Positions 1 to 55,700 are shown, numbered from the stretch's first letter. The stretch: DNA of 64,000 nt from Zootoca vivipara (GCF_963506605.1 NC_083289.1:54126001-54190000); one strand, 5' to 3'. The notes: generated by a model not told the origin, from the letters alone. Program-made: numbers and translations.

Positions 1-680
1 CATTGCTTGCGCTGGAGCAGTGGGCTGGGACGGCTTCTTGCTTGGAGCCCCTCCTGCCCCTTTTCCTTGAGAGGAGAGCTGAATTGTGCAGGAGCCGAGC
101 TGTGGGCTGGTCCAGGGCTCTTGGCGAAGCTCCTTGAAGGAGGCTCCTTGGCAAGCGAGGGCTTTTGCCTTAGCAGGGACATCTTGGGGCCGAGTCGTTC
201 CCCGAGAAAGAGGTGGCATTCTTTTGTCTGAACAAACCCTCCAGTCTTTGGGGCAGCCTCCCCCCCCCACTCTTTTGGGAATGTCTTTTGCTCAGCTCCC
301 TGCCTAGTAAGCGTCGCTACATTGGGGGCATCTGTCTCCCCCTTCCCCAGATAGCAATGCCGGTATGGCTGCAGGACCTGCAGGACCCCCCCTGGCCTGG
401 TCACCCCCTTCTCTGGGCTGTGCCTTGTTCTTCTCTCTGTGTTCCTGCCCTTTGGTTACAGGAAGTTCCAGTCACCTGCCGCCCTTCTCCTTTGCGCTTC
501 TGGGACTGTAGAGGAAGCTGTTCTCCCCCCAGAGCTTCCTGGGTTCTGATAGGGGGTGCCTGTGCCGTTCTTGCCCCTGGTTCGCAAGGGAGCCGGTTCC
601 CTCCCTCCTCCAAGGAAGCTCAGCAGGTGATGTATCCGCTTCCCGCGGTGTAAAGGGCTTGCACTGTGTTTGCCTTGCAG

Positions 681-2010
681 GGCGAAGGTGCAGAAGAGGC
701 CGGGGGGCAGCTCCGCTCAGCCCTGCGAGAACATTGTGGTGGCCTACTACTTCTGCGGAGAGCCCATCCCCTACCGCACCCTGGTCAAAGGCCGCGTCGT
801 CACCCTGGGCCACTTCAAGGAGCTGCTCACCAAGAAAGGGAACTACAGGTGAGCAGGGAGGGATGCCTCAGGTCCCTGGCCAATGAGCCTCGCCTCTTTG
901 GCTCCAGCCTCTGCCCCTAGGGGTGACAAGCCCCACAGACGTGTGGGCCCAACTCTGATGGTTGGCACAGAACCAGGAAAGAGGCAGGGGGAGGGCGCCT
1001 GGGAGACGGATCACTGTGCAAATCTCACCTCCACAAAACCAAGCCAAGAGGTCCTTGGAGAAGGAAACTCAAGTCAAAACCCGATTTTGTTTGCACCAGA
1101 GCTGAGGAAGCCTGTGCCAAGGGAAACCCCAAACACACTATATGGCACGTCAGTTGAGCATGTTCAGAGTTGCACGCTTTCTTCTGAACCGACAATTTCC
1201 ATTTTTTTGCAGAACCTCTCCTTTAGTTTCTGGGCAGAGAGCAGATTGGGCCCATTTTAGAGGTGGGGGTGGCGGGATTCGGGGGCAGCTGAGCTGTGAG
1301 GGGAGCCCTCTGTCAGCGCAGCCATGCACCACATGACCCTTCTTCACATTCTGATGAGGACTAGAGACTTGCTTTAAATCAGGGGGAGCTGTGGGGATCC
1401 TCCTGGTGTCGCCAGACTTCAGCTCCCAACAGCATGGCCAGCAGTCAGAAATTATGGGAGCTGCAGTCCCAAATCCCCTGGAGTGACACAGATTTCTCCA
1501 CCCCGGTTTAAAAAGTGCGCTGGGTTGCCGGTCATTCTGCATCAGGATCCGCAGAGGGTTCGGCCCATTAGTCTGCCGGAAGCCCTGCAAAAGTTTGCAC
1601 ATTTCCTCTGTCCTCGTCACTTGTGCTAAAACGCTGTTGATGGTTTCCAGTGAATCTGTAGAGTTGGAAGAGAGCCTGAGGTTCTTCTGGTCCAAGAATA
1701 TTTTGCCCAACATGGGTGCTCGGAGGACAGGGCCCAGCTGCGGGCAGGGTGGGATTCTGGCCCGGGGTCCTCCTTGCTGCCCCTTTGCCTTCTGCTTTGA
1801 GTTAGTGCTGGAAAGCCCCCACTGAGCCTCCGAGAGGCCGCAGGCTCTGGACCCCCCCACAGCTCTCTGTCCCTGTCTTGCAGGTATTACTTCAAGAAAG
1901 TAAGCGACGAGTTTGACTGCGGCGTGGTGTTCGAAGAGGTGCGGGAGGATGAGGCCGTCCTGCCCATTTTTGAGGAGAAGATCATTGGGAAGGTGGAGAA
2001 GATTGACTAG
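681..2010 (+). CDS. AXIN1: Axin-1, last two coding exons (DIX domain); gene starts upstream of the window
   Basis: Exons 681-848 ([56 protein letters not shown]) and 1884-2010 ([41 protein letters not shown]). AG/GT flanks and phase-2 junction are consistent. Matches the AXIN1 DIX domain; adjacent to PDIA2 as in human. Confidence 0.97.
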
Positions 2011-4165: not shown

Positions 4166-5042
4166 CTACAGCTCGTCTCTTGGTTCTGGGGAGCCGGGTG
4201 GGCTCGTTCGATTCTCCTGGGGTTCCTCGGGGGTCTCAGCAGCCTGGAAAGCCAGAGCCCAGTGTCACCGTGGGAACGGGGACAAACTCAATGTTTGGGG
4301 TGGGCATGAGGGGTTGCCGCTGAAACTCACCTTGGGGTCGTCCTGGGGAGGGACCTCACCCCCGTTCTCCAAGAACGCCGAGAAGGATTCCAGCTCTCTG
4401 GTGCTCCGGTACTCGATCATCTGGGGCGGAAAACGGGGGGCGTTGGCCTGGCTTTGCCCCACAAGCGGCTGCTGCCGCCTCCCATCTACAGTACCTCCTG
4501 TCGCAGCCTCCTTGCTCTACTGTCCCATAGGACCCAGGCACATTCTGCAGAGGATCCCAGGAGCCACAGCACCGTCCCCCCCACCCCATGGGGCACCTGC
4601 ATTACCTTCTTGCCCTGCCCTGCAGGGAAGTAGTACAGCGTTGGGTAGGCTCGGATAGGGATCTCTGCTACCTCGTTGGCCGTGGCGTCCATCTCGGCGA
4701 TGAGGACATCCTCGCGGTCTTTATATTTCTCGCCCAGCTCTGCCCAGGCAGGCGCCATCGCCTTGGAGTGGGGGCACCAGGGGGCATCTGTGGAAGCGGG
4801 ATGGAGTTAGGAAGACGCAAGTCTGTTTTATCACCAGGCCAGTTCACCAAACTGCGGGAGGCAGTGCAAGACAGGAGTGCCTGGCATGCTATGGTCTATG
4901 GAGTCACAATGAGTCGGACACGACTAAACGACTAAACAACAACAACAACAAGTTCACCAGCTGCATCCCTCTCTGGAAAAAGCTGACCTGGAGAAAGTTG
5001 TGCAGGCTGCGTCCCTCATTAACACCTTGCTGTGGGGCTGTC

Positions 5043-14989: not shown

Positions 14990-17900
14990 ATGGGGCTCAG
15001 CGGTGAGGGAGGCTTGGTGGGGTGGGTGTGTTGGAAATGGGAACCAGGGCACAGAGTGGGGGGCTTCTTCCCTGAGCAGGGGGAGCAAAAGAAACTGAGG
15101 AACATAGTTCTTCCTCCAAGAAGCAGTGGCGTGTGTGTGTTTCTCAAGTGCTCACCCCCCCCCAGTGTAGGAGCCAACTCCTATTGGCTGAGGTCCCTTT
15201 GGCCTCCGCAATAAAATATTTGAGGGGGCCAGGAACACCCCCCCCAATTGATGGGTATTGCCATTCAAATGGTGGGCATGCACTGCATCTTGTGATTGAT
15301 TATATGGGATAGGGCTTATTCCCCCCCCCCATATTTTATTCAGCTTTGCACCCCAACCAGCATCAAGCTAACTGCACGTTGTATTAACCCTTTCCCCACA
15401 GAGAGTAGAGGTTTGGGGCCTGGTGAAGCCCCTTCTGAAAGACAGGTAAGGAATGCTGGTGGGCAGAGACCCCCTTGGGGTCCCTGATGGGGGGGACTGG
15501 CTTCTTTCCTCCCTCCCCACATTGCTGAGCAAGAGGGGAGCCTCCATCTCCCTGACCCTTGGCCGTCTGCTCCATTGCCCAGCAAAGCAGATTCTCCAGG
15601 TCTCTGGCCTTGGCCCTCTGTGAGGAGTAGAAGGGGGTCCCGCAGACTCCCTTGGGCTCGGCCACTCACAGCCAGGATGGCCCGTTTGTGGGGAGGGCCA
15701 GGGCAGGGGGGCAGAGGCTGCTTGGAGGCCAATTGCTTTGGGCTTCCTGCCTGCAGGTGGATGAGGAGGGCGAGGCGGCAGCCGCAGACCCCCCTTTGCA
15801 CATGGAGGCCAGGAAGGGCCACTGCGACACAGCCCGCCAACTCCTTGCCCAGGACCCAGAGGCCCTCAACAGCCAGGTAGGACAGCCAGCGGCTGCAGAG
15901 GATGGGTTGGGGGGCCCACCTGCCCCCTGGACCCCCTTCCCTTGGTGGGAGATGACTCCTTGCCCCCCTCCAAGGCCCCGCGTCTGCACAAGGCCCACCC
16001 CACGCTTGCTCTCTCCAGGATGCCAGTGGCAGGACGCCCCTTTTCTGGGCCACGGAGTACAGACACGAGAGCCTGGTGGAGTTCCTGCTGGCCCGTGGAG
16101 CAGATCCAGCCGTGCGGGATCACGTGAGGAATTGGCCCTCCGATTGCGCTGCGAGGCTGGACACCTGGGGGTGGGGAGGAATGAATTGGGGTGGGGGTAT
16201 TCACTCCCTATTGCCCACCCAGCCAGATGACCAGTTGGGAGCAGTGATGCACCTCAAGCTTAAACTGTTATGGGGCCCCCTTCACAACCAGAAAGAGGTC
16301 TGTGAGAAAGGGGGGGGTGTTACATGAGCCACAGCAGAGCAGACAACTTTCCCCTCCCTTCCTTCCTTCCTTCCTTCCTTCCTTCCTTCCTTCCTTCCTT
16401 CCTTCCTTCCTTCCTTCCTTCCTTCCTTCCTTCCTTCCTTTACAACATCTGCACTACTTACTCTCAAACTTTGTGTTGATTGATATATACACCACAAAAA
16501 TAATCAATTTGAGTCAAAGCAATTGGCCTCCATCATGTGACTCAAATGGTGTCCCCCAAATTAAAGTATGTGGATTAAAGTGGCTTCTCGGGCCCCTGTG
16601 GAATGAGGGGCCCATAAACTGAAGCTTCGTTCATTTCTTAGTAGATCTGGCCCAGCTGGTAGGAAGAGGGCAGAGCTGAGTGGGGAATCTCCAAAGTGGG
16701 CTGGGCTGCCAGTGTGGAGAAGCAGCTCTCCCAGGCACAAGTTCCCTGCTGGCATACTGCCACATGGTGCCACGGCACTGGAGAGGGTGGGCTCTGCCAG
16801 CCAGGGAGGAAGCCGGAGGCACCTTGTGGGGCTGACCGAGGAGACGCTGTGTGTGACTGTGTGTTGCAACCAGAGGCAGGCAGGGAGGCTGCAAGGGAAG
16901 GCTGCTGCTCACTTGGGGATCCTGGGGGCAGCAGGCCGTGGGGCCCCTGGGGTCCACAGACTGCAGAGTCACACAACCCCTCAAGGGTGGCCTGGGAGGT
17001 CCTTGGTCGAGGGCCCCCCTTCTCCCCCAGCTCAGCTCAACCCCTTCTCTCTGCTGCCCACCCCCCTTCCCTCCTTAGGAAGGGAACCTCTGTCTGCACT
17101 GGGCGGTGTATGTGGGCAGCCCCTCCATCGCCAGAATGCTGCTGGATGCCGGGTCCGATGTGGATGCGCTGAATGGCCAAGGCGACTCTCCCCTGCACCT
17201 GGCGGCCCAGGAGAGGCGCTATGAATGTCTCGTGTGAGTGAGGGTCTCATGTGGGAATGTTGTGGATAATAGGAGAGGATCTATTGATTAAATATTATCC
17301 TTCCTCACCCACGCTATTACATTCCCCTGTATATTGCAGGAAGCTAGTTGGTAGATTCGTTACGACTCTCTTGAGTTAAGCAATCCAGTTTGGCTTGTCC
17401 AGATTGGATTATTCCTGGTCAATTCCCCTTTAAAAAGAATAAAGACACAACAGTCTTCTCTTAAAAGTAAGAAGTTTACTTACATTCCGTTCACAGTATG
17501 ATCCTGAAGGCAGCCTTTAGCTTGTAGTTACAGAAGAGAGTGTGGGTTCATCCCATATGGGGATTGAGCCCATGTGCTGCTGGCTGAGAGCCAGCAGACA
17601 GCAAAAGGCATCAAGAGCAACAAGAGAAAGATGGCTGCATGCCAGGTCACGCCCACCTACCTGGTTACATGCAGGGGGAGGATGCTCCAGACAGGTGGGA
17701 GTGCGTGTCCACTCTGGGCAAACAGGAAATGTGGTACAGCATTTGACTGCTCCAGTGGTGTCCCATCCCGCAGCCCAGTGGTCCTAGCCAGGCCCAGAGC
17801 TTGGCTGCGGCGGCGAAGCAGCCATCGCCCAAAAGCTCCCTTGTGCCCTTGGCAAGGAGATGATAGGTCAGCCCCCGCCTCTCCCTTGGCCTGGCTGTGC

Positions 17901-20900
17901 AGGCTGGGATATTTCAAGAGCTGTGCAGACCAGACGCTCACTCTTTGCTAGGCAGGCACATGAGAGGCGCTGAAGCTCTAACCAGTGATCCTCAACCTTG
18001 GGCCTCCAGATGTTTTTGACCTACAACTCCCATGATCCCTAGCTAGCAGGACCAGTGGTCAGGGATGATGGGAATTGTAGTCTCAAAACATCTGGAGGCC
18101 CAAGGTTGAGGACCACTGCTCTAGTCTGCTGGAGAGGGCTCTGCAGTGAGAGATGCTCCCGCTATGCCCTGAGAGCGGGGGGGGGGGGGCCCAGCTACGT
18201 CTTCCTCTCTTTTCCGTCACTTCCCACCCAGACAGAACTGTGAGAGCATCATTCTGCTGAGTCTGACGCTCCACCTTAAAGCATCCTGGATTCCTCCATC
18301 AAAAAGGCTCAAACCAGCCGATCTAAGCTTTCCTTTTAAGCTGCAAAGGAAGGACACTCTGCTGAACTCACAAACCGCGAGGCAGGAAGGATAATATCTA
18401 AGCAATATATCCTCTCTCAGCATCTATTCTCATCCCAAGAGAGAGCAGTGGAGGAGCCCAGAGGCCGGCAGGCGAGCTCCTAGCCGCTCTGAGCCAGATG
18501 GGAAGGATTTTTTTTGGGGGGGGGTCACCCTCGCCTAAGGTTGCCAGATTTTTTCCAATGAATCCAGGGACACTTCATTGAAATGAGTTGGAATGATAGG
18601 ATTTTGTCAGGGGACTGATTTGTAAATCTGGGGACTGTCCCCGGGAAACGGGGACTTCTGGTAACCTTAACCTAGCTGACCCCCCAGGGAGTCAGGAGTT
18701 GCAACAGGAGAGGAGGGAGGTCTTGGGGGGGGGGGAGAGCTTGGCTAGAGGAGAAGGCAGCAGGAGGCTTCCGGGGGGGGGTGTTGTGTGGATGAAGAGC
18801 AAAGAAATGACCCCCCCGAGGTTCCCCCTGGGGCTCCTGTCGGGGTAGATAGGGCCTCCCCCAGCCCTTCTTAGTACTTCTGACTGGAGGACTTGGGGGC
18901 TGCCCCTCTTTGTGTCCCACAGCCTGCTTCTTGCCCATGGAGCCAAAGTCTCCCTGAAGAACAGAGCTGGCCAAGTGGCCCTGCAGTGCTCCAAGCCCAG
19001 CTCCCCTTCCTGGCGGGCCCTGGAGGCGGCCTCGGCACGGCCCCCCCACCCGACGGAGAGGCTCCTCTGCAGGTGAGCGGGACCCTGGGGTGGCCGGTCT
19101 AAGGTGGGACCCCCTCCCTTCGACTGGGCTGCAGCTGTGGCTCAACGGCCGCTCCTGTCATCCCCAGAGACATCTCCCGGGGCTTTGAGCAAGTCCCCAT
19201 CCCTTGCGTCAACGGGGTGGACGAGGAGCCGGCCCCCGGAGGCTTCCTCTATGTCACGCAGAACTTTGTGTCGGACTCTGTGGTGCTCCCAGGGACGGGC
19301 TGCGGCAGAAGTCAGGTGAGGGGCATTTCCCACCCACTCCTCTTCTGTGCCCCAGGGTGAATCGGAGGGGCTGGAGTTGCCCCACCATCCATCCAGATGC
19401 CCCACAACTCTGGGGCATCTTCTGAGCAGCCCCTCCAAACCAGAGACATTTCGCAGGCCTGATCCCCACCTGCATTTTGACCATTCAGGCCTCCCTGTGC
19501 TGTTTGAAAGCATCCTTTGCCAACCTGGCGCTCTCCCAAACCCAACAAAGAGCATGTTTTGGATGATCTGGGGCTGACAGAGTCTGTCCTCAGAACCCCC
19601 TGGAGGGCGGCTGGTTGGCGAATGCTGCACCGGGAGCCTGGAGGATACCCAAACCAGGTGGCTTGGGAGGGAGGATCTGGCGGGCCTCTGCCTGGGCTGG
19701 CTCCCTGCAGAGGACTGCAAAAGCAAAATAGCAATCAATCAATCAAATAATAATAATAATAAATTAGGCGTCTGCCAAGCTGTGGCTGCAGAGTGTCTGA
19801 GCATGACCCCTGAACCGCCTTCCCTGGGGCCTGACTGCCTTGCCTTCTTTCAGCACTGCGAGTGTGCCAGTTCCTGCTCTGCGCCCACCTGCCCGTGTGT
19901 CGCGCGCGGCCTGCGCTCCTGGTACACTCCGGTGAGAACCGCTCCTGCCCTTCCTGGGGTCAGGCGGGGAGGTCAGCTGGAGCCACTGAGGGCCAGCCGC
20001 CCCTTTCTCTCCTCTCGTGGTCCAGGATGGCCGGCTGGCACCAGACGCGGCCGGCAGTACAGCCGAGGGGGGCCCCATCTACGAGTGCCACATGCTCTGC
20101 TCTTGCGCCAGCTCCTGCCCCAACCGGGTGGTGCAGAGGGGCCTCAGGTGAGCCCCCGTTCCCTGGGCCAGGGCCTGCGGGCTCCCCGGCCTCCTCAATT
20201 TAGAGCTGCCCCACAGCAGAAGTACTTCAGGAAGGCAGTGGGGTGTAGTGGTGAGAATGTCAGACGAAGACCTGGGGGATCAGGGTTCGAATCCCCACTT
20301 TGTCATGAAGCTCACTGGGTGACCTTGGAGTCAGTCTCAGCCTCTTAGCCTACCTCGCAGGGTCGTCGTAGGGATCAGCTGAGGTGGGGGATGGACCATG
20401 AACTCCTTGGAGAAAAAGGTGGGAGACAAATGCAATGAATAAGCTCAGGCACAGGCAAACTTGGCCCTCCAGATGTTATGGGACTACAATTCCCATCATC
20501 CCTGACCACTGGTCCTGTTAGCTAGGGATGATGGGAGTTGTAGTCCCATTACATCTGCAGGGCCAAGTTTGCCCTATGCCTGAATAGGCTCTTCTGCTGA
20601 CTTGCTTAAGAAAGCTGGAGGGGCCAGCCAGGTGGGCATGTCAGCAACACCAACCTGGTGCCCAGAGATCTCCGTGAGGTCGCAATTGGCACCCGTGCAC
20701 GTCGTGAAATGGGTCAGGTGCCTGGCTCATTTCTACCACTGGTAGGAGCAACCACCAGCCTGGGTCAGATGCCTTGGCACCCTCTTAGAATCCTAGAGTT
20801 GGAAGAGACCCCAAGGGCCATCCAGTCCAACCCCCTGCCAAGCAGGAAACACCATCAAATATGGCTGTCAAGCCTCCGCTTAAAGACCTCCAAAGAAGGA

Positions 20901-22696
20901 GACTCCACCACACTCCTTGGCAGCACCCTCTTCCTTTGCCCCTGGCCAAATGGCACACGATTGGGACATTCTGAAGCAGAGCTTGGATGGACTCCCGCAT
21001 GGCAGGGGGTTGGACTAGATGACCCCTGGTGTCCCTCCCAACCTTGCCATTCTGTGATTCTATGAGCAGCCCCTTTCCAGATTCCCGCTTCTGTGAGGGG
21101 ATCCTTTGTTCTTTTCCTCTGAGACAGCGCTTTGCGTGTTCAAACCCTGCCCCTTCCATTGGGGCAGAAATACTTGCAGCAGCCCAGCAAGAGGAGCAAA
21201 GGGGCCACTTTCCTCTCACTCCGTGCCAGCCCAGCTGCCAAGGGGAGAGGCCTGGGGGGCGCGATAGAGCTGAGAACCCCAATTTCCAAGTCGCCCCCTA
21301 AAAAACAACACACTTGTCACCCCGCCATTGGGACTCTTGCTTGCCTGCTTCTCTTCTCGCCCCATAACTCCCCTCGCCCCTCTGGGGGCCCCGCTTTCCG
21401 CTGCCCGAGGTGGGCCCCAGCAGCCTCTCGCCCACAGGACTCAGCTGCAGCTCTACCGGATGCCAGGCAAGGGCTGGGCAGTGCGCACGATGCAGGAGCT
21501 GCCCCGAGGAGCCTTCCTTTGCCAGTAAGTCCCAGAGCGGGGGGGGGGGGAGAGAAGAGAGGGACTGAATCCAGGCAATTCCCCCCCCCCAAAAAAACCT
21601 CATGGCCCTTCTCTCCCCCCCCCAGGTACTTTGGGGAGCTGATTTCCAGCACAGAAGCTGCCCAGCGAGAGGACGCCGCCTACTCCTTTGTGGTGGACAT
21701 GCAGGTGACATCTCCGCCTCCACTTGGGCGGTGGGAGGGATTGTGCCCCCTTCCTGGGCGGGGGGCGGTGGCACTGGAGCTCAGCGTTGCCCACCTCTCC
21801 CCGCAGGCGGGCCCTGGGTGCTGCCTGGACGGGCGCTTCTACGGCAGCGTGGGCCGCTTCCTGAACCATTCGTGCCAGCCCAACCTGGTGGCTCTGCCGG
21901 TGGTCGTTGGGCATGAGATCCCCGGCATCGCTTTCTTCAGCGCCCGGGCCATCCAGGCGGGCGAAGAGCTGGTGTAGGTGGTGCTGCCGCCGGAGAGAAA
22001 GGGGGGCTTGCCGTGGGTTGAAGGGGCCCCCGCCACCTCCATGCCTGCCCCCTGGACTTACAACCAGCCAGGAGGGGGGCTTCTCGGACTTCGGTCTCAG
22101 GTTTGCCCTTGGAAGACTCAGCCGGGAGGAGGCGCTGCTTGGAGCCAAGCCACTTGGCTCCGCCCGTCATCGGCTCTGGCGCCACCTGCTGGTGGCCTCC
22201 CGGGGGGGGGCTTCAGCCACTCCCGCATGGGCGCCTGGCAACCGCCGGAGACGTGGCTCTCTGCCTGCTCCAGGGCCCTCCCCGCCCTTGAACAGAGCAG
22301 CACTTTGGCTGCAGCAGCTGGGGTGGCGAGAGCCGGTCCCGTCCCGATGCTTCCTCTGATCCCCTGCCGGAATGGGGGCGGCGGGAGGGGCCCAGTTTGC
22401 CCCCGGCGAGGACCGACGGCGTTTCTGCCCCTCGCAGGTTCGACTACGGCGAGCGCTTCTGGGAGGCGAACGGCCGCCGCTGGGCTTGCCTGTGCAAGTC
22501 GCCCGGCTGCAGATACCGGCCGTCGAGGGAAGGGCCAACGGCAGCCGCCGCCGCCGCCGCCGCGGGAGACCCTGGCCTGGGCACCTCCATGTCTTCCTAC
22601 CCGCTCCGTGGCTTCTCGCGCAAGTCCGCGCGGAGCAGCCCGCTGAAGACGGCCCCGCGCCGCTCCGCGCGGCCTCGACGGCGCCCCCTGCGCTAG
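14990..22696 (+). CDS. Compact EHMT1/EHMT2 (GLP/G9a)-like histone-lysine N-methyltransferase: ankyrin repeats + pre-SET + SET + post-SET, about 508 aa
   Basis: Well-supported exons: 15757-15876, 16019-16123 (DASGRTPLFWATEYRHESLVEFLLARGADPAVRDH), 17079-17233 (EGNLCLHWAVYVGS...GDSPLHLAAQERRYECLV), 18923-19072, 19168-19315 (DISRGFEQVPIPCVNGVD), 19854-19931 (HCECASSCSAPTCPC), 20026-20147 (IYECHMLCSCASSCPNRVVQRGLR), 21438-21524 (LQLYRMPGKGWAVR), 21626-21704 (YFGELIS), 21807-21973 (RFLNHSCQPN...AIQAGEEL), 22438-22696 (FDYGERFW...CLCKSPGCRY...stop). All phases are compatible, with no stop or frameshift. Tentative 5' exons: 14990-15002 (Kozak gaccATGG) and 15402-15445. Confidence 0.9.
16357..16440. 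repeat. (CCTT)n microsatellite
   Basis: Read directly. Confidence 0.95.
17983..18118. mobile_element. Palindromic hAT-type MITE
   Basis: Long inverted termini CAGTGATCCTCAACCTTGGGCCTCCAGATGTTTT / AAAACATCTGGAGGCCCAAGGTTGAGGACCACTG; core shared with the copies at 20446 and 60390. Confidence 0.75.
20446..20582. mobile_element. Palindromic hAT-type MITE
   Basis: Inverted termini CAGGCA..CAAACTTGGCCCT / AGGGCCAAGTTTG..TGCCTG; 8-bp flanks AATAAGCT / AATAGGCT (TSD with one mismatch). Confidence 0.8.
20786..21065. mobile_element. Two CR1 LINE 3' end fragments in opposite orientation
   Basis: ggttggactagatgacc...ttccaacc..attctgtgattctatga is a CR1 3' terminus, and its reverse complement appears at 20786-20930. 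Confidence 0.65.
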
Positions 22697-24260
22697 CCGT
22701 GCGGACCCAGCCCCTGTCTTGATCCCTTCCCAATAAAGAGCCGAAGAGCCAGCCGCCTGTCTCGGGCCTGATTGCTGCGTCGGGGGCCAGGTTTCGCAGG
22801 GAGAAGTGGGCGAGGGAGCGGAGGCTCCTTCGAACGGGAGGCACTTGGAACGAGCTTTCTGCAAAAGCGGCCTCGAAGTGCAAAGAAGGGGCCGCGAAGG
22901 ATGGCGGCGGCGACCCAAGGCGCCACCTCTGCTCCTGTCCGACTCCGCACCGTCCGGCCCACTCGGCGGTCCGGCCAAGAGGAGGGAAGGGACTCGCCCG
23001 CCGGGCTGCTGCTGCTGCTGGCCCCGCACCAGCCCCGCGCAAAACTGAAGGAGCCGGACGGGGCGCTTCCCCGCCGCTGCTGCGGGGCTTCCCAGGGTTG
23101 GCCGCATCCCGCTGCCGCGCTCTGCACGCGCGCAGAGGCACCGGGCGTCAGGTGGAGCTAAGCCTGGCGGTGCAGGCCAGCAGGGGGCAGCCAAGAGTCG
23201 CCCGGCCTCCGGCCCGACGACGGTGCCCCGCCGCAGAAGCGGCCACTTGGCGCCGCCGCCGCCGCCGCCCGCCTGCAGCAGCCCGGGCGCTCCGGGGCCG
23301 CCGCCATGACCATCAGCGCGCTCCGCCCGGGGGGCAGCCCGCGCCTGCAGCTGCCCTGCCTGGCCAAGGTGGGTGGGGGCGGGCGGAGGGCGGTTGCTCG
23401 CGCGCCTGCAACGCCCGAGGGGCACCGGAGGTTGCCTTGGGTCGGGTCGGGGTGGGGGAGGGAGCCCCGGCCGGGTCCCGACTCCCCGCGCTGCCCCTCC
23501 GGGAGGGAGCCCGGAGGTCTGGGTCTACTCTGAGCGGCTGCCGCCCCGCAGATGGAGCGCGTGGTGCTGGGCATGCAGGACCCGGACATGGGCATCAAGC
23601 TGCGCAGTCAGCGCCTCCTGCTCACGGTCATCCCGCACGCCATGACCGGTGAGTGACTGAGTCTCCCCCGAGGGGGCGCCCGCCCCGCCCGCCCGCCGCC
23701 CCTTCGCCTTCCCGGCAGCGGCGCCTCCCGCCCGCCCGCGGGGATCTCGGCGGCGCCGGCGGCGCAAAGCTGCCTCTGGAGATGGATGGATGGACGCGGG
23801 AGGGCCGGTCTGTCTGAGCCCCGCCGTGGCGCCCCTGCCCCAGCAATGACGGGGCCGGTGGGGGCGGGCGGCGGGGGGCTCCCTGCTGACCGGGGGGCTC
23901 CCTCTCCCCGCAGGAAGCGACATCGTGGAGTGGCTCCTGCAGAAATACGGCCTCTCGGAAGAGGGTGAGTCTCTGCCGCCGCGCGCCCCGCGGAGGCGCT
24001 GCTCTAGGGCGCGGCGCTGCTGGGGCGAGGGGCTGCGGGAGGGCGGGTAGGGGGCGGCTGGGCAGGGGGCGCCTCAGTCCCGGGGGTCTGCTCGCCACCC
24101 TCGTCCCTCTCGCAGAGTCCCTGCACCTGGGCAAGCTGATCGTGAAGCACGGCTACATCTACCCGCTGAAGGAGCCCCGCAGCCTCGCCCTGCGCGTCGA
24201 CGAGACGCCCTACCGCTTCCAGGTGGGTCGGCGAGCGAGCATCTCGGGGGAGGGAGGAGG
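22330..24260. promoter_or_regulatory. CpG island covering the last exon of the EHMT-like gene and the RGS11 promoter and first exons
   Basis: Visibly very high GC and CpG density, (GCC)n runs, Kozak gccgccATG at 23306. Boundaries are approximate. Confidence 0.8.
22732..22737 (+). terminator. Polyadenylation signal of the EHMT-like gene
   Basis: AATAAA 36 nt after the TAG stop at 22694-22696, in otherwise GC-rich sequence. Confidence 0.7.
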
Positions 24261-49600: not shown

Positions 49601-52600
49601 AAGGGTTTCCCAATTGTTGGTGTTTATACTACATTTTTAAAGATTTGCCTAGAGACAGTCTTTAAACCTCTTTCGTTGACCGCCAGCATTACTGCAGCTG
49701 ACACACCAACATGTCACGACACACAGTTTGGAAAGCTCTGCTCTAGAGCAGGGGTGGCCAACTCCCAAGAGACTGTGATCTACTCATAGAGTTAAAAACT
49801 GGCAGTGATCTACCCCCGTTTCAGGTTGTTGAACTTTTTCTATGAAGGAAAGCCCTGTTTTTTGAGGTTCAGGTTGAAGTTGTTGAGCTTTTTAGGGAGG
49901 AGGAAAGCCCTGTTTTTTTTGGGGGGGGGGTTCAGGTCAGAGTTGTTGACCTTTTAGGGAGGAGTAAAGCCACATTTTTGGGGGGTGCAGGACAAACTTT
50001 TTGAGCTTTTTTTTTACGGGAGCTAAAGTTTGGGGGGAGCCAGTGATCTACCAGTAGATCACGATCTACCTGTTGGACGTGCCTGCTCTAGAGGATGCCT
50101 GCTGTTAGGGTGTGTGAAGTCTACCCTGTCTTTGGCTAGTCTCTGCTGTCTCTGTGGTGCCCATTTGCCTCAGTGTGGCCTCTCCCTGCAGGTGTTTATC
50201 CGAGAGCTGATCTCCAACTGCAGTGATGCTTTAGAAAAATTGCGCCACAAGATGATGTCCAAAGGGGAGGTCCTGCCAGAACTGGAAATCCACCTTGAGA
50301 CAGACTCCAAACAAGGAACCATCACCATCCAGGTACTGCTGCTGGGAGGGTGCCTTGTGCACCCTGTGTTCCTTTTCCTTGGCCAGGGCTACCAAGGAAG
50401 GTCTCTGGACCGGAGAGATTTTGCTGCCTCTGGCCCAAGGGGGACTGGTGTGCGGAGACTGCCTGGCTTGAGATGTAGCCTTGGCCGCAGCTACCCAATG
50501 AGCTTGGTGTCTGGTGAGATTTGGCCCTGACTTAACTTCTGACCTTAGTGCTGGACCCCATAGAGCAACCTTCTTGTGCTTTGCTCAGGTCAGAGCTAGA
50601 AACAAAATCTCTCTCTTGCCCGAGTCTGTGGAGATGAGAGAGCTTTGCCCTTCCTGTTCCAGAGTGGGGGCCAGGACATGACACAGATGTCTTTGCCATT
50701 CTCTTCCCTGCAGGACACAGGCATCGGGATGACCCAGGAGGAGCTAATCTCTAATCTTGGGACCATCGCCAGGTCTGGCTCCAAGGTAACAGGGCAGAAG
50801 GGTTTTTGACAGCGGGTGCAGCTAGGCTTGCCACTGTTCCAGGGTGGAGCGATCCCTGAGGCTACAAGGAGAGGGGGCACTGGCTTCTGGCACGTTTGTG
50901 ACCCACCTTTGAGTTGTTGGGAAGTGGCTAGACATCTGTCGTGGCAGCCTGGCTGCAAGCAAGGGGCTTTTGTGTCCACAGGCCTTCCTGGACACGCTGC
51001 GGAACCAGGCAGAAGCCGGCAGCAGGATCATTGGCCAGTTTGGAGTGGGCTTCTACTCGGCCTTCATGGTGGCGGATCGGGTGGAAGTTTTCTCACAGTC
51101 CGCAGAGCCAGGCAGCCCTGGGTACTGTTGGCACTCGGATGGGTAAGTGGTGCTCTGGAGGGACCTGGGCAAGACTAGGGGGCGGGCAGGAGGAAGTGCA
51201 GGTTGGGGGCAGAAATCTTGGATATTTTTTAAATTTAAATCATTTTTTTACCATTTAAATTGGATTTTTAAAATAAAATGCTTTTAGAGGAAAAATCTTT
51301 CTAAAGGTAGTGTTCCATTTAAGTTTCATTATAGCCCAAAGGCTATTTATCAGGAAAGAAGGATTCGTTTTAAGTTTCTCATGTGTGCTAAAGCTCAAGT
51401 CTAGGGTTTTTTTATTTTAAAAAATGGTTTAACCACCTCAGTTAACAAACACGGATACATATCCTATAATGTTAATGATTTAGTTAAATAAATTGTTTAA
51501 ATTGTTATTAAGGAAATGGTTTTCTAATTCTAGATCTGGGACATTTGAGATCTTGGAAGCCTCTGGAGTTCAAACAGGGACGAAAATAATTCTCCACCTC
51601 AAGGAAGACTGCAAGGAGTTCGCCAACGAGGAGCGCGTCAAAGGTGATCCCCCTGCAGCTAGCTGGGGTTCCCCAGGGAGGCTTTGCGGGCTTTGGCTTG
51701 GGGAATGTGCGTGGGGGTGGGAGAAAGGCTTTGCACTGAGAAGCTCCCACTTTCGGTCTCTGGCAGCATCTCCTGTGAGGATCAAGAATCCAAAGAGCTG
51801 CCACCACCAAAGATTTGCTGTCCCTGGCTTCTGGGCTTGTTAACTGGGCTGGGGGGCCTTTCTGACCCCTTCTGGTCCTCCACGTGCAACATGTCTGCGG
51901 TGGACCTCCATGCGCTCGCGGTTCCGCCTTCCAGGATCTCCGCAGCATCCAGCCCCGCCTTTCCTTTCCTAGTGGGCTGCTGTGGGCTGTTCCAGAGTGT
52001 TTCTGGGCCCCCCTTGGGTGGGTGGGTGGGCCAGTGGGCACTTCTGGAGTTTGGGTATCCCGGGCAGGGCTGTTGACCCAGGTTGATCATCAAACCCCTT
52101 CCTTCCTTCCTTTCTTCCGCCAGAGGTCATCACAAAGTACAGCAACTTTGTTGGCTACCCCCTCTTCCTCAACGGTCGGCGTGTCAACGCCATGCAGGTA
52201 AGGCGGCTGCCGACTTGTGCTGCCTGGGCCTTGAATGTGCAGAGGCCCCAGGGTCCTCTTCTGCCCTCTTCCGCCCAGCTCAGAACAAGGTGCTGGTCAG
52301 GAAGAGGAAAGGCTTAGGAAAGGCCTGCCTGGGATTTTGCCTCCACCCTGGGCTTTGTGGGGGTCCTGTGCAAGTGGCTCAGAGGAGCAGCCCCCTCTCT
52401 GGAGCACAGGGGCAGCGCTTGCTCTCTCCTGTGAGTTCCCAAAAGGACAGTGGAGGATGCCCTCCCACTAGAGGTCAAAGAGAACAACAATTACCAGACC
52501 TTTAGAAGGCATCTCAAGGCAGCCCTGTTTAGGGAAGCTTTTAATGTTTGATGGATTTCTGTATTTTAGTGTTTTGTTGGAAGCCGCCCAGAGTGGCTGG

Positions 52601-52653
52601 GGGAACCCGGCCAGATGGACGGGGTATAAATAATAATAATAATAATAATAATA

Positions 52654-52715
<62 letters not shown>

Positions 52716-55700
52716 TCACGTGCTTCTCAATGCCGGGTCCTCTTCCCGTGGCCTTTTCATTTCAGGGTGGGGTAGTGGCTTGGAGAAGGTTGCTAATGCC
52801 CTCCTAGTCCCACACTTGGTCCGCTTTGGGGGCAGGAGGAGGAGGAGAATGATTCTGGGCTCCTCTTTGCTGGTCTTCCTGGAGCCTCCGGGTGTTTTGG
52901 GCTTGCCTCTACCAAACTCCTTCTGACAGCATTGGCCTTGGTCCCTTGCGCCTTCTGAATGCCTCAGCAGCCTCCACCCCACGAATCCCTCTGGCCTTGG
53001 CAGGAGCTGAGCCCCCCCTGTTCCCCCTCCCTCTGCGCAGGCCCTCTGGACCCTGGAGCCAAAGGACATCGGGGACTGGCAGCACAAGGAGTTCTACCGC
53101 TTCATTGCTCAGGCCTACGACGAGCCGCGCTACGTCCTGCATTACAAGACAGATGCGCCTATCAATATCCGCAGCATCTTCTATGTCCCAGAGGCGGTGA
53201 GGAGTGGTCTGCAGGAGGGGGGCAGCCACACCCCAGAAGGGAGGTTGAGCCAAGTCCCTCCTGGCTGGCAGAATATCCGGTTTCAACCTGGGCAACCCAA
53301 TCAGATGGATGGGTACAAATAATAACATCATTCTTATGACTTCCTGTGCCTCCAGAAGCCCTCTATGTTTGACGTCAGCCGGGAGCTGGGCTCCAGCGTC
53401 TCTCTCTACAGCCGCAAGGTCCTCATCCTGACCAAAGCCGCAGACATCTTGCCGAAATGGCTCCGCTTCCTGAAAGGTAGCCACCCTCCCCTTTTCAGGT
53501 GCCCTGGGCAGGCAAGGGGGTTGCTTCTGGGCCCCAGCTCCCCCTTGCCCCCCCCCCCTGAGGCTGCCCCTCCCTCTGTTTGGTGCAGGAGTTGTGGACA
53601 GCGAAGATCTCCCTCTGAACCTCAGCCGGGAGCTGCTCCAGGAGAGCGCACTCGTCAGGTGAGCTACCTGTGGGCCGTGTCGGTGTCTGCGCCTGCCCAC
53701 CCTTCTGCCCTGGGGCTTTCCTGGAAGCAATTCTGCTGTGGCCTGCAAGGGGGAGTGTGAGGCTCAGCTCGCTGATCTGCCTCCCCCCAAGACAGGCTGT
53801 TGATCTGCCCTGCCCAGTGTCGGCTGCTCTAACTGGCAGTGGCCCTCCAAGGTTCCCCTTTCCTTTTTGTTTTTTTTGACAAAGTAATAATAAAAAATGC
53901 ACCCCACCACTGAGACCATTCCATTGTAACTATCCAACCTCCCACAATTTCAACACCTCTTGTGATGGTTTGACCCCTTTCCATTTTAACAATAGAAATT
54001 CTACAAACACCCTCCATATCTCCTCAAAATCACTTCTCCTGCATATTCCCCGTCTTGCCTTAATGGCACATGTTAATTTATCATTAATAGCTATATCCCA
54101 CACCTCTTTATACCATTCTTCCATTTTATATTCTGCTTGCCCCTTCCACTTCCTAGCTATAATAATGTGTGCAGCTGTCAATAAATTTGTGAGCAAGTCT
54201 TTCCTAGCCTGCGAACCTTCCACCCCATTGTAAACTGATAATAATGCTACCTCTGGACTTTTGGTCAGCTTTATCCCAGTGATTTCTGTTATCTCCTTAG
54301 ACACCCTTTGCCAGAAAAATTGGCTCCCCCTTTCCTGCCTGCTCCTTTGGGCTGGGCCCTGGTACCTCCTCCTGCAGGCCTGCTCCCTGCTTGGTCACCA
54401 GGGAGCAGGGATTGGGCCCTCCCAGTGTTGCTGTGACTCCTGTTCCCATCAGCCCTGGCACCTGGTGTGCCTAATGCCAGGAGTTGGGATCCCGGCAGGC
54501 GGAGGGAGGCTTCTTGGTCACAGAGCAATGCCAGCTTCATTGAGATTGCACATGGCACCTGGGCAGATCTCTTGGTAAAGGGGGGAAAGAATAGAACCCC
54601 CCCTCCCAGCCAGAGGTGCTTCTTTCCTCCGCTGCCTCTCCTGCTCCTCTTTTGATCTTTGGGGCTTCCAGGCACTTCTCTCCCCCTGCCCCCAGTCTCC
54701 CTGATGTTGGGTGTCGTCCTGCAGGAAGCTCCGGGGAGTCTTGCAGCAGAGGCTGATCAAGTTCTTCATTGAGCAGAGCAAGAAGGACCCTGAGAAGTAC
54801 GCCAAGTTCTTTGAGGACTACGGGCTCTTCATGCGCGAAGGGATTGTCACAATCGCTGAGCAGGATGTCAAGGTGTGTTGGCCGACAGCTGGTGGGTGAG
54901 GTTTTTTCCTTGCCAAGTTTCCAGAGGGAGGTGGGAAACCGGGAGTGGTGCCACCTACTTCATAAAATGTGATTGTAAAACACATCCTCAAAAGTGGTTT
55001 ACTTGGGGAATGGATGCCCCAAGGGCGAGGGGCGAGGGGCCTGCCTCCTTTGCCCTGTGACCGGCGGGACTCTCCTTCGCAGGAAGACATAGCTAAGCTG
55101 CTTCGCTACGAGTCATCGGCACTGCCCGCTGGCCAGCTGACCAGCCTCTCGGACTACGCCGGCCGCATGCAGGCCGGCAGCCGGAACATCTACTACCTGT
55201 GCTCTCCCAACCGCCACCTGGCCGAGCACTCGCCCTACTACGAAGCCATGAAGAAGAAGGATGTGGAGGTGAGCAGGAGAGCAAAGAGGGGCCTGTAGGG
55301 TTGGGCGCTGGGCTCAGAGGAGGAAGCCCTGTGCCCGGGGGGTGGCCACTCTTCCTTTCCTTGGAACTGAGCACCGCCCCCCCCCATTTGGGCCCCACAG
55401 GTGCTCTTCTGCTACGAGCAGTTTGATGAACTGACCCTCCTGCACCTCCGGGAGTTTGACAAGAAGAAGCTGATGTCTGTGGAGACGGATATCGTCGTCG
55501 ACCACTACAAGGAGGAGAAGTTTGAGGAGAAGCACCCAGGTGGGCTTCTGCTGTGGGGCGGGAAGAGGGTGTGAGCCCTTTTCAAGCAGAGTTGGCTGCC
55601 TAGCTTGGAGGAGGTGGGAAAACCCCAGGAGGCGTCCTAGAGGCTGGCCTCTTGTCAGCACTCCCCACCCTCTCAGGAAGGACTTTGAGGCTGTGATTGA

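Follow-up and report, generated by a model that had tools for sequence, protein, structure and literature searches.

G9a (EHMT2) and GLP (EHMT1) are regarded as a fixed vertebrate pair, and both are drug targets and developmental regulators. In GLP, which is ~1300 aa long, ankyrin repeats are followed by N-SET, Zn3Cys9 pre-SET, SET and post-SET segments. The cage residues of the GLP ankyrin module have been named, and a Trp/Trp/Glu "3A" mutant loses H3K9me binding (PMC4335294), while in the G9a-GLP heterodimer both ankyrin cages are required for nucleosomal H3K9 dimethylation (PMC12871594). In the I-SET region, GLP D1131 and D1145 contact the H3 tail (PMC2797608), and the roles of the I-SET Asp residues and of the Tyr and Phe that set the mono/di product specificity of G9a have been described (PMC2797608, PMC8541646). 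A further point of comparison is PRMT8, a lineage-restricted paralog of the ubiquitous nuclear/cytoplasmic methyltransferase PRMT1 that acquired an N-terminal extension with a myristoylation signal, is directed to membranes and is expressed in restricted tissues (PMC6827574, PMC3595262, PMC8621972). PRMT8 differs in having a Rossmann fold and in methylating arginine, and the analogy drawn here is one of mechanism, not homology, in which the squamate myristoylation is a consensus match only.

Here we describe a locus in a 64-kb stretch of Zootoca vivipara DNA (the window) that proves to be a genuine and intact gene of 13 exons and a cut-down, fast-evolving copy of EHMT1/GLP. It appears to be, in lacertids, the ortholog of a gene shared across Squamata, for which no published study was found. 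Judged from sequence, we assign a probability of about 0.5 to the reading that this gene encodes a squamate-specific neofunctionalised lysine methyltransferase paralog with changed substrate and location, comparable to PRMT8 relative to PRMT1.

Gene structure and genomic context

Rebuilt from splice sites, the gene comprises 13 exons on the + strand, from the ATG at 14990 to the TAG at 22694-22696, with a CDS of 1527 nt (508 codons, 0 internal stops) and 12 introns, each GT..AG with a polypyrimidine tract. The gene and its neighbours are as follows.

AXIN-type DIX exons, 631-2007, + strand: domain-level match
PDI-type thioredoxin gene, ATG 13399, - strand: starts 1.6 kb upstream of the EHMT1-like ATG
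Exon 1, 14990-15002, + strand: ATG and 10 nt in a good Kozak context (gACCATGG), coding for MGLS plus one base of codon 5; donor G/GTGAGG; N-terminus same as in Podarcis models
Exon 2, 15402-15445, + strand: codes for ESRGLGPGEAPSERQ; acceptor ccccacag/AG, donor CAG/gtaagg; 94% identity by tblastn with Podarcis protein P0160
Exon 3, 15757-15876, + strand: acidic stretch and first (partial) ankyrin repeat, LHMEARKGHCDTARQLL; placed by splice sites and alignment to P0160, P0151 and canonical EHMT1
Exon 4, 16019-16123, + strand: ankyrin repeat bearing the methyl-lysine cage, with Arg at codon 64 (16031-16033)
Exon 5, 17079-17233, + strand: ankyrin repeats including the LHW cage Trp; Pfam Ank_4, Ank; 100% identity with Podarcis
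Exon 6, 18923-19072, + strand: last ankyrin repeat, then linker; placed by splice sites
Exon 7, 19168-19315, + strand: N-SET segment RDISRGFEQVPIPCVNGVD
Exon 8, 19854-19931, + strand: first pre-SET Cys group, CxCx3Cx4CxC
Exon 9, 20026-20147, + strand: second pre-SET Cys group, Cx3CxCx3C; Pfam Pre-SET 2.2e-05 with the exon alone
Exon 10, 21438-21524, + strand: start of the SET domain, LQLYR..GWAVR
Exon 11, 21626-21704, + strand: I-SET substrate platform, by residue alignment to GLP and family alignment
Exon 12, 21807-21973, + strand: SET core with RFLNHSCQPN and a family-specific 3-residue deletion (HE-IPGIAFF); Pfam SET 8e-12
Exon 13, 22438-22696, + strand: FDY catalytic Tyr, post-SET CLCKSPGC, disordered tail, TAG stop
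AATAAA polyadenylation signal, 22732-22737, + strand: 36 nt 3' of the stop
RGS11-like gene, first exon (ATG) 23552, RGS domain 31767-31982, + strand: domain-level match

Exons 1-2 translate to MGLSESRGLGPGEAPSERQ with no difference from the annotated Podarcis models, so both 5' exons that the sequence-only reading had called tentative are correct. The 11 exons that it considered solid lie where it had placed them and splice into an open frame of 508 aa, the AATAAA that it assigned to the gene is present, and the flanks agree at the domain level with its location between PDIA2 and RGS11. The AATAAA at 22732 borders the CpG island of the RGS11-like gene; the promoter of the short EHMT1-like gene is CpG-poor, a difference from EHMT1/GLP.

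The protein contains 4-5 ankyrin repeats (versus 8 in EHMT), followed by N-SET, pre-SET, SET and post-SET segments in the order found in both EHMT1/GLP and EHMT2/G9a, and the Ank, Pre-SET and SET domains are each recognised by Pfam on single exons. Against the PDB, exon 4 hits two GLP ankyrin structures, 3b7b and 3b95 (1.3e-15), and the SET exon (exon 12) has EHMT1/GLP as its top match (3e-15) with EHMT2 next. SETMAR and SUV39H, the next-best matches after EHMT, share the pre-SET/SET/post-SET arrangement but lack ankyrin repeats and have PDB scores of 1e-8 or worse. Each of the motifs named in the earlier reading was found in addition to the ankyrin repeats: all nine Cys of the pre-SET Zn3Cys9 site, split between exons 8 and 9, the NHxC motif as RFLNHSCQPN, the catalytic Tyr of ELxFDY in EELVFDYG, and the post-SET CxCx4C zinc site as CLCKSPGC (22487-22510). 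In alignment A1, N387, H388 and C390 are invariant columns and Y426 is kept in at least 90% of rows. The NHxC, FDY Tyr and product-specificity Phe/Tyr positions are shared with EHMT1/GLP, with both the FDY Phe and the Tyr counterpart of G9a Y1067 unchanged, and the SAM-side motif reads GWAVR, not GWGVR, in lacertids and Anolis. By sequence comparison, the catalytic, SAM-side and zinc residues are kept, which accounts for every residue class that SUV39-type SET enzymes need for SAM-dependent lysine methylation.

Distribution and origin of the short family

Orthologs automatically annotated as "EHMT1-like" or "EHMT2-like" occur in over 25 squamates spanning geckos to snakes (together, the short family), and the lacertid models (Podarcis, Lacerta) are 90-95% identical to the Zootoca protein. 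As annotation pipelines routinely find the gene, its earlier description as hidden was overstated, whereas the anticipated automated "EHMT-like" label is present across lizards and snakes. These labels mask a distinct orthologous group deserving its own name. Sequence searches, including one with a SET+tail query, found no ortholog outside squamates, in keeping with the suggested lineage restriction; in the SET+tail search, the last squamate had an E value of 2e-33 and the next match was a frog SETMAR at 2e-29, compared with 1e-56 to 1e-88 for full-length short-family members. Several current models are wrong, with intron read-through or wrong starts: the P. raffonei models X1/X2 read through introns, and the Anolis sagrei and Tiliqua P0157 models are without the first pre-SET exon. 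Such aberrant models may reflect misannotation, or decay in some lineages.

Phylogenetic placement was based on canonical EHMT1, tetrapod sequences among them, and on fish and ray EHMT2. The short family is monophyletic (100/100) and nested in the EHMT1 clade (100/99), a placement that applies at the whole-clade level, with the fish and ray EHMT2 outside the clade of EHMT1 and the short family; the proposed EHMT membership thus takes the specific form of an EHMT1 derivative. Its stem amounts to 0.9 changes per site, and its tip branches are long (0.14-0.73, versus 0.00-0.04 in tetrapod EHMT1). In the family alignment, 186 of 419 columns are conserved at 85% or more, and 86 of the 134 near-invariant canonical columns are still present in the short family.

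The strong divergence and N-terminal truncation described in the earlier reading both hold. No canonical EHMT is more than 47% identical to the protein, against 84% or more among the EHMT1 of birds, crocodilians and salamanders, and tblastn searches of the 64-kb window with crocodilian/salamander EHMT1 and fish EHMT2 yielded no match to EHMT1 residues 1-859. Relative to EHMT1/GLP, ~860 N-terminal residues are therefore missing, including the acidic stretch, the Cys-rich RING-like region, the automethylation site and the first ankyrin repeats. These same results bear on the possibility that the locus is the species' only EHMT1 (or EHMT2), translocated and with further exons upstream, a reading left room by the fact that canonical squamate EHMT1/EHMT2 were not among the compared sequences. 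The empty search across 64 kb, the gap between 47% and at least 84% identity, the PDI gene starting 1.6 kb upstream on the opposite strand and the conservation of the ATG exon in orthologs all argue against it and make it barely conceivable. From the "-like" naming and the missing N-terminal half, we infer that the gene coexists with canonical EHMT1 and EHMT2 in squamates.

Because the gene has 12 introns, duplication occurred at the DNA level rather than by retroposition, as had been proposed. A match of intron positions and phases to EHMT1, also put forward in the earlier reading, may hold and is touched by one indirect data point. The duplicated segment would have covered the 3' part of EHMT1/GLP, beginning with the third ankyrin repeat and including the post-SET, and the event would predate the split of crown squamates; the copy would later have acquired a new short 5' end. 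The squamate radiation spans ~200 million years, and a third, truncated EHMT member kept across it, with its catalytic residues in place but its reader cage and substrate pocket altered, is a natural test of what each part of the read-write machinery is needed for.

Selective constraint and expression

The frame is intact from geckos through snakes, and a relative differs from the window by 9 substitutions in total, 6 synonymous versus 3 non-synonymous. Together with the conserved columns and the catalytic and zinc residues, these observations indirectly support the earlier claim that the gene is kept under selection. A 280-nt contig from sequencing run X1 (from the relative and presumed to be RNA) covers exon 5 exactly and shows the splice from 17233 to 18923/18924 (exon 6), and a 208-nt contig of the same run spans exon 7 with an extra 42 + 19 letters absent from the flanking introns. 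In three RNA runs whose species label is that of the best-matching DNA data sets, depth was ~0 on exons 5-13. The CpG-poor promoter and the near-absence of reads in these runs suggest tissue-restricted expression.

The long tip branches, the almost complete lack of reads in three RNA runs and the aberrant gene models in some species would also be expected of a decaying, functionless duplicate, a pseudogene in the making in this species. Such decay is highly improbable given the open 508-codon frame with its 12 clean introns, the intact orthologs in all major squamate lineages, the conserved zinc and catalytic residues, the excess of synonymous over non-synonymous changes and the spliced transcript in the relative (run X1, presumed RNA).

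Altered reader cage and substrate groove

The first cage Trp is replaced by Arg (W64R) in 14/14 short-family members, whereas all 17 canonical EHMT proteins have Trp at this position. Of the other cage residues, the second Trp and the Glu are retained, and the third Trp is also Arg in a colubrid snake and both iguanian models, so that the complete H3K9me1/2 cage (Trp, Trp, Glu, third Trp) is not found in the short family. The substrate groove is changed as well. In the window, the I-SET segments ISD, EDDSY and LFD of EHMT1 read ISS, EDAAY and FVV, and the first and third Asp (of ISD and LFD) are missing from all family members; with them, the acidic residues that hold the basic H3 residues beside K9 are lost. 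Human I-SET numbering (GLP D1131, D1145 and the G9a D1083 equivalent) was counted with the FDY Tyr set as G9a Y1154. The two lost Asp are those that contact H3K4 and probably also H3R8. Further differences from EHMT1/GLP are E341Q (CQY for CEY), present in 14/14 members, and a 3-residue deletion in the HQDLRFPR loop common to the short family. Measured against EHMT2/G9a, the losses are the same.

The protein would be an active lysine methyltransferase but, since the cage Trp has become Arg and two I-SET Asp are lost in all members, is probably no longer a canonical H3K9me1/2 read-write enzyme. If these losses were simply tolerated, the gene might encode an ordinary tissue-specific H3K9 mono/dimethyltransferase that arose by subfunctionalisation, consistent with the kept fold and full set of catalytic residues, with the retained second cage Trp and Glu, and with the unchanged G9a Y1067-equivalent Tyr and FDY Phe, which set the mono/di product (PMC8541646). 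We consider this quite unlikely, as two of the substitutions hit known contact positions (PMC4335294, PMC2797608), the cage change is invariant and the Asp are gone in all members instead of being scattered, the N-terminal half is missing and with it the Cys-rich region and nuclear functions, and the stem branch is as long as 0.9 changes per site.

Structural models and SET-SET pairing

For the Podarcis ortholog, AF2 gives a model with pLDDT 82 that is confident in the ANK and SET regions, with residues 31-185 forming helix pairs at pLDDT ~96. The SET part superimposes on G9a/GLP with TM 0.85-0.90, the values being TM 0.89-0.90 and 48-49% identity for EHMT1/GLP and TM 0.85-0.89 and 44-45% identity for EHMT2/G9a. 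The protein is thus predicted to fold like the GLP/G9a ANK and SET modules.

The Podarcis short SET (residues 190-462) was modelled with a ray EHMT2 SET, giving a score of 0.74 versus 0.00 for the best of 3 controls, a result that may reflect memorised structures because G9a/GLP SET domains have many solved structures. The mark for this pairing score was reached by 51/78 solved complexes and 2/108 mismatched pairs. Model runs agreed in at least 89% of contacts, with partner pLDDT of at least 80, and the predicted interface, formed by RDISRGFE of the N-SET and by pre-SET segments, is strongly conserved in the family. Subject to the caveat on memorised structures, the SET-SET interface with EHMT2/G9a is predicted to be compatible. 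This raises the alternative of a regulatory subunit or decoy that, through SET dimerisation with canonical EHMT2 or EHMT1 or with itself, would modulate the H3K9me1/2 machinery of certain cells in what it does, what it reads or where it acts. As nucleosomal H3K9 dimethylation depends on both G9a-GLP ANK cages (PMC12871594), a heterodimer in which one of the reader cages is defective should dimethylate nucleosomes poorly. The model score and the conserved interface segments favour this alternative, which nevertheless seems unlikely: the model pass may be memory and indicates likeness, not binding by this copy; the modelled partner is a ray EHMT2, not a squamate one; the catalytic residues are fully kept across the squamate radiation, which argues for selection on catalysis by the protein itself; and a myristoylation-type N-terminus fits badly with a chromatin partner.

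New N-terminus and C-terminal tail

Both ends of the protein are new relative to EHMT1/GLP. Only 62 residues lie N-terminal of the cage repeat, and they begin with M-G-x-x-x-S-K/R, Gly2 being shared by all family models whose start is credible. The N-myristoylation consensus (PROSITE PS00008) is G-{EDRKHPFYW}-x-x-[STAGCN]-{P}, with a basic residue afterwards being favourable. The window start, MGLSESR, matches this consensus, as do cordylid, skink, gecko and iguanian models; snakes have MGLNGEA, which gives no match. An N-terminus of this type suggests membrane or cytoplasmic targeting. At the other end, a conserved, basic C-tail motif (AAGDPG..PLRGFSRKSARSSPLK..RRRPLR, 22601-22693) lies in a region to which the Podarcis AF2 model gives pLDDT <50, and could be a binding site for a new partner, a nuclear localisation signal or a target of automethylation. 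If the basic tail did direct the protein to the nucleus, this would fit poorly with membrane anchoring.

Within the preferred reading of a neofunctionalised paralog, a more specific and tentative version, which we regard as doubtful, is that of a third EHMT-type enzyme: an N-myristoylated membrane/cytoplasmic methyltransferase with a rebuilt groove and ankyrin pocket, which would act on non-histone or own-tail [AS]-[LR]-K-S targets in a restricted tissue. If the lipidation-type N-terminus is real, it points to EHMT-type lysine methylation outside chromatin, and if the membrane/cytoplasmic version is true, the enzyme would be the lysine-methyltransferase counterpart of PRMT8. The snake MGLNGEA, the GWAVR motif, the aberrant models and the near-zero RNA depth were counted against the neofunctionalised-enzyme reading as a whole.

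Finally, truncated, diverged and EHMT1-derived copies with the same automatic name, "EHMT1-like", are also found in the bird Colius striatus (P0027, P0181, P0187). Unlike the short family, these copies are 64-65% identical to canonical EHMT1 and lack ankyrin repeats, and their acidic I-SET residues are retained, as is the HQD.RFPR loop. As their features differ and they form a clade separate from the squamate short family, the Colius copies represent an independent event.

Gene structure and genomic surroundings

The EHMT1-like gene comprises 13 exons on the forward strand at 14990-22737, translated pieces of which are already visible in the ORF list. Splice-site inspection showed that each exon begins after a polypyrimidine-AG acceptor and is followed by a GT donor. 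Joined by a local script, the coding sequence is 1527 nt long (508 codons, no internal stops) and runs from the ATG in gACCATGG to a TAG stop at 22694-22696, with AATAAA at 22732, in a window free of N runs. The exon structure and open frame proposed in the sequence-only reading are thereby borne out; its two tentative 5' exons were correct, reproducing exactly the N-terminus of the annotated Podarcis proteins, and every motif it had listed was found. The joined 508-aa model was used locally for the frame check, BLAST, alignment and tree, and database searches were run with single exons or with database orthologs such as the Podarcis protein P0160 rather than with the joined model.

Pfam searches of single exons returned Ank, Pre-SET and SET. 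The closest solved structures to the SET exon are those of EHMT1/GLP (3e-15), followed by EHMT2 and then SETMAR and SUV39H2, and for the ankyrin exon bearing the methyl-lysine cage the matching structures are the GLP ankyrin entries 3b7b and 3b95. Intron 4 holds a tetranucleotide microsatellite (16330-16440) whose ORF-list translation is (PSFL)n or (KEGR)n.

Neighbouring features in the window
631-2007, forward strand: AXIN-type DIX exons (domain matches)
about 4.5 kb to the ATG at 13399, reverse strand: PDI-type thioredoxin gene (domain matches)
from 23552: first coding exon of an RGS11-like gene, within a CpG island
31767-31982: RGS domain of the RGS11-like gene (domain match)
50027-55600, forward strand: HSP90/TRAP1-like exons (Pfam HSP90)
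61620-61841, forward strand: zinc-finger-like ORF CQICQKDLSAMNSVRREQHVNR, 3' of RGS11 together with the HSP90/TRAP1-like exons

The names of these neighbours are our presumption from domain matches and from recognition of the sequences, and the gene order around RGS11 presumably differs from that at human 16p13.3; a casual inspection of the interval between the PDI-type gene and RGS11 revealed no RhoGDI-like gene. The CpG island of the RGS11-like gene spans 22.5-24.5 kb (CpG observed/expected 0.8-1.0), and the start region of the EHMT1-like gene is CpG-poor (0.1-0.3). The EHMT1-like gene reaches the edge of this island with its last exon and poly(A) signal, and the ATG at 23552 is about 800 bp past the AATAAA. 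A Podarcis raffonei model, isoform X1 (P0179), reads through the 3' flank in other frames, and the match of its tail to window frames as far as about 23048 shows conservation of the downstream flank in Podarcis. The a' thioredoxin exon of the PDI-type gene (4489-4806, reverse strand) reads APWCPHS, with CPHS in place of the active-site CGHC.

A squamate-restricted family

In a HMMER search with the SET exon, short squamate proteins ranked above canonical EHMTs. Their database names include "hypothetical protein" (Lerista), "SET domain-containing protein" (Salvator) and "histone-lysine N-methyltransferase EHMT1-like" (Anolis sagrei), the last confirming an earlier guess that an automated label of this kind might already exist. 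A 524-aa Lerista query and cluster look-ups added Hemicordylus, Tiliqua, Rhineura, Eublepharis, Gekko, Sphaerodactylus, Paroedura, three species of Podarcis, Lacerta agilis, Sceloporus and Varanus; the snake members include Python, Candoia, Pituophis, Pantherophis, Thamnophis, Ahaetulla, Crotalus, Protobothrops, Vipera, Ophiophagus, Notechis and Pseudonaja. The window model shares 93-95% of its residues with the Podarcis models and 90% with that of Lacerta agilis, in an alignment with 25 gap positions, which places the window in another lacertid.

A SET-plus-tail query, chosen to avoid ankyrin noise and covering proteins of 277-882 aa, matched squamates alone down to an E value of 2e-33, followed by a frog SETMAR at 2e-29; within this size range it returned no ortholog from tuatara, turtle, crocodilian, bird, mammal, amphibian or fish, in agreement with the lineage restriction suggested from the sequence alone. 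In the literature searched we found no published treatment of the gene, the term "EHMT1-like" being met in unrelated papers. We firmly conclude that this gene, intact in the window, is the lacertid member of an ANK-SET orthologous group that is restricted to squamates, derives from EHMT1 and is truncated at its N-terminus, and that it is already annotated, yet unstudied.

Several species have the short gene in two differing copies, which lie on one contig in Hemicordylus (P0154/P0155) and Tiliqua (P0156/P0157) and on separate contigs in Lerista (P0007/P0004) and Anolis sagrei (P0151/P0005). In several models the first pre-SET Cys exon is missing or translation continues through introns into other frames: P0151 of Anolis sagrei, P0157 of Tiliqua, P0176/P0179 of Podarcis raffonei, which additionally has an intact 507-aa isoform (P0433), and P0186 of Ophiophagus. 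These may represent misannotation, intron retention or lineage-specific decay.

Origin by partial duplication of EHMT1

In an IQ-TREE analysis of 33 rows and 458 columns, the 14 short proteins included are monophyletic (100/100), with a stem branch 0.9 changes per site long. They join tetrapod EHMT1, the EHMT1a/b proteins of fish and the Colius copies (100/99) in a group that leaves out the EHMT2 of fish and ray; this tree does not resolve the branching order inside the EHMT1 clade. Tip lengths are 0.14-0.73 in the short family versus 0.00-0.04 in tetrapod EHMT1 (birds, crocodilian, salamanders).

Further EHMT exons upstream were rejected, as tblastn with full-length EHMT1 and EHMT2 gave window matches beginning only at about residue 860, and there is no room for the missing N-terminal half because the PDI gene lies 1.6 kb upstream on the opposite strand. 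A retrocopy is likewise excluded by the 12 introns, in line with the DNA-level duplication, rather than retroposition, that the first inspection had proposed. With the N-terminal half absent and 12 introns present, the gene is a partial DNA-level duplicate of EHMT1, older than the gecko/non-gecko split. To the opposing reading, that it is the sole EHMT1 of the species, we give next to no credence. The best 120 matches listed in a search with EHMT1 ANK-SET were from birds, crocodilians and salamanders.

A comparison of isoform indels across about 120 EHMT1 models yielded a single boundary, before RDI(A/S)RG, an indirect match to the exon 6/7 junction; intron positions and phases may equal those of EHMT1 more widely, as the first inspection had proposed. 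The bird Colius striatus carries diverged EHMT1-derived SET genes (P0027, P0181, P0187) on two contigs; they have 64-65% identity to canonical EHMT1 and no ankyrin repeats, and are an independent partial duplication of EHMT1.

Expression and selection

Three raw RNA runs (X8-X10), whose species label is that of the best DNA holders, were surveyed over exons 5-13 at about 6% of the reads each. Depth on these exons was about zero, which is no proof of silence, with about one read near exons 10-11 in each run. The reads otherwise fell on two intronic blocks, 17850-18249 and 20450-21049, plus a few other intronic stretches. These blocks, in introns 5 and 9, are SINE-like, with segments in opposite orientation and the peptide-like frame MVRDDGNCS common to both. 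No other part of the stretch examined is heavily covered in these runs, and the blocks draw hundreds-fold depth from copies elsewhere and yield "opposite strands" joints.

In sequencing run X1, from a related organism and of RNA nature only by guess, a 280-nt contig covers exon 5 exactly and passes straight into exon 6, skipping the 1689-nt intron, and a 208-nt contig crosses exon 7 with extra letters at both sides. Over exons 5-6 the nine differences listed between this run and the window are six synonymous at third positions and three non-synonymous in two codons, a small sample in favour of purifying selection. Decay of the gene would be in keeping with the aberrant models of some species and with the long tips; beside the open frame and this pattern of substitution, we regard it as highly improbable.

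Conserved catalytic residues and altered pocket residues

The family alignment retains the nine pre-SET cysteines, GW(G/A)VR, NHxC, the post-SET CxCx4C, the FDY tyrosine, taken as G9a Y1154, which is essential for catalysis, and the equivalent of G9a Y1067, which sets the product state (PMC8541646). Among the 134 columns in which canonical EHMTs are at least 90% conserved, the short family has the same residue in 86, and its own conservation reaches at least 85% in 186 of 419 columns. Where 17/17 canonical proteins have the first Trp of the ankyrin cage, 14/14 short members have Arg; mutating this Trp together with two other residues abolishes the binding of H3K9me by GLP and G9a (PMC4335294). 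In every short member CEY has become CQY, the HQDLRFPR loop has a 3-residue deletion, and the Asp of "ISD" and that of "LFD" are replaced. By our own residue count these are GLP D1131 and D1145, residues of the I-SET platform holding H3R8 that make contact with H3K4 (PMC2797608); the former corresponds to G9a D1074, an inhibitor contact (PMC8541646). Lacertids have also lost the equivalent of G9a D1083.

Credible starts read MGLSES[RK] in lacertids and the cordylid, MGLSGSR in the skink, MGLSASK in Gekko and MGAKGSKC in Anolis; internal starts read MGASGSKC (Sceloporus) and MGQGGSK (Lerista), and the snake start is MGLNGEA. Gly2 is constant across models with credible starts, and all listed starts except those of snakes match the N-myristoylation consensus followed by a basic residue. 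At the other end, from geckos to snakes, AAGDPG is followed by PLRGF[AS][LR]KS[KA]R..PL[KR]..TRS.R, in the window PLRGFSRKSARSSPLKTAPRRSARPRRRPLR. Canonical EHMTs lack this motif, and the window's version of it is reminiscent of the histone H3 ARKS motifs.

An AF2 model of the Podarcis ortholog built on alignment A1 has a mean pLDDT of 82, with confident ANK (31-185) and SET domains, the SET part superposing on G9a/GLP crystal structures at TM 0.85-0.90, and with residues 1-30 and 464-501 disordered. In this monomer the tail (464-501) has pLDDT below 50, so docking as a pseudosubstrate is unsupported.

We put at about one half the probability that the gene encodes an active lysine methyltransferase in which early remodelling of the reader and substrate pockets was followed by their conservation, and whose lipidation-type N-terminus and new C-terminal motif would imply a new substrate and location, with restricted expression. 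An ordinary tissue-specific H3K9 methylase would retain the same catalytic residues; set beside the cage and I-SET replacements, it appears unlikely.

SET-SET dimer model

A modelled complex of the Podarcis short SET (190-462) with ray EHMT2 SET scored 0.74 (best of three controls, 0.00); 51 of 78 solved complexes attained the score mark, as did 2 of 108 mismatched pairs. Given the many solved G9a/GLP SET structures, the model may owe this pass to memory. The model supports SET-SET binding, as likeness of interface and not as proof that this copy binds. A role as dimer partner or modulator of G9a/GLP would agree with this and would leave the retained catalytic residues to be accommodated; we hold it as a tentative second choice behind an active enzyme with remodelled pockets. 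Contact agreement among runs was at least 89% and partner pLDDT at least 80, with the modelled interface formed by RDISRGFE and pre-SET segments.
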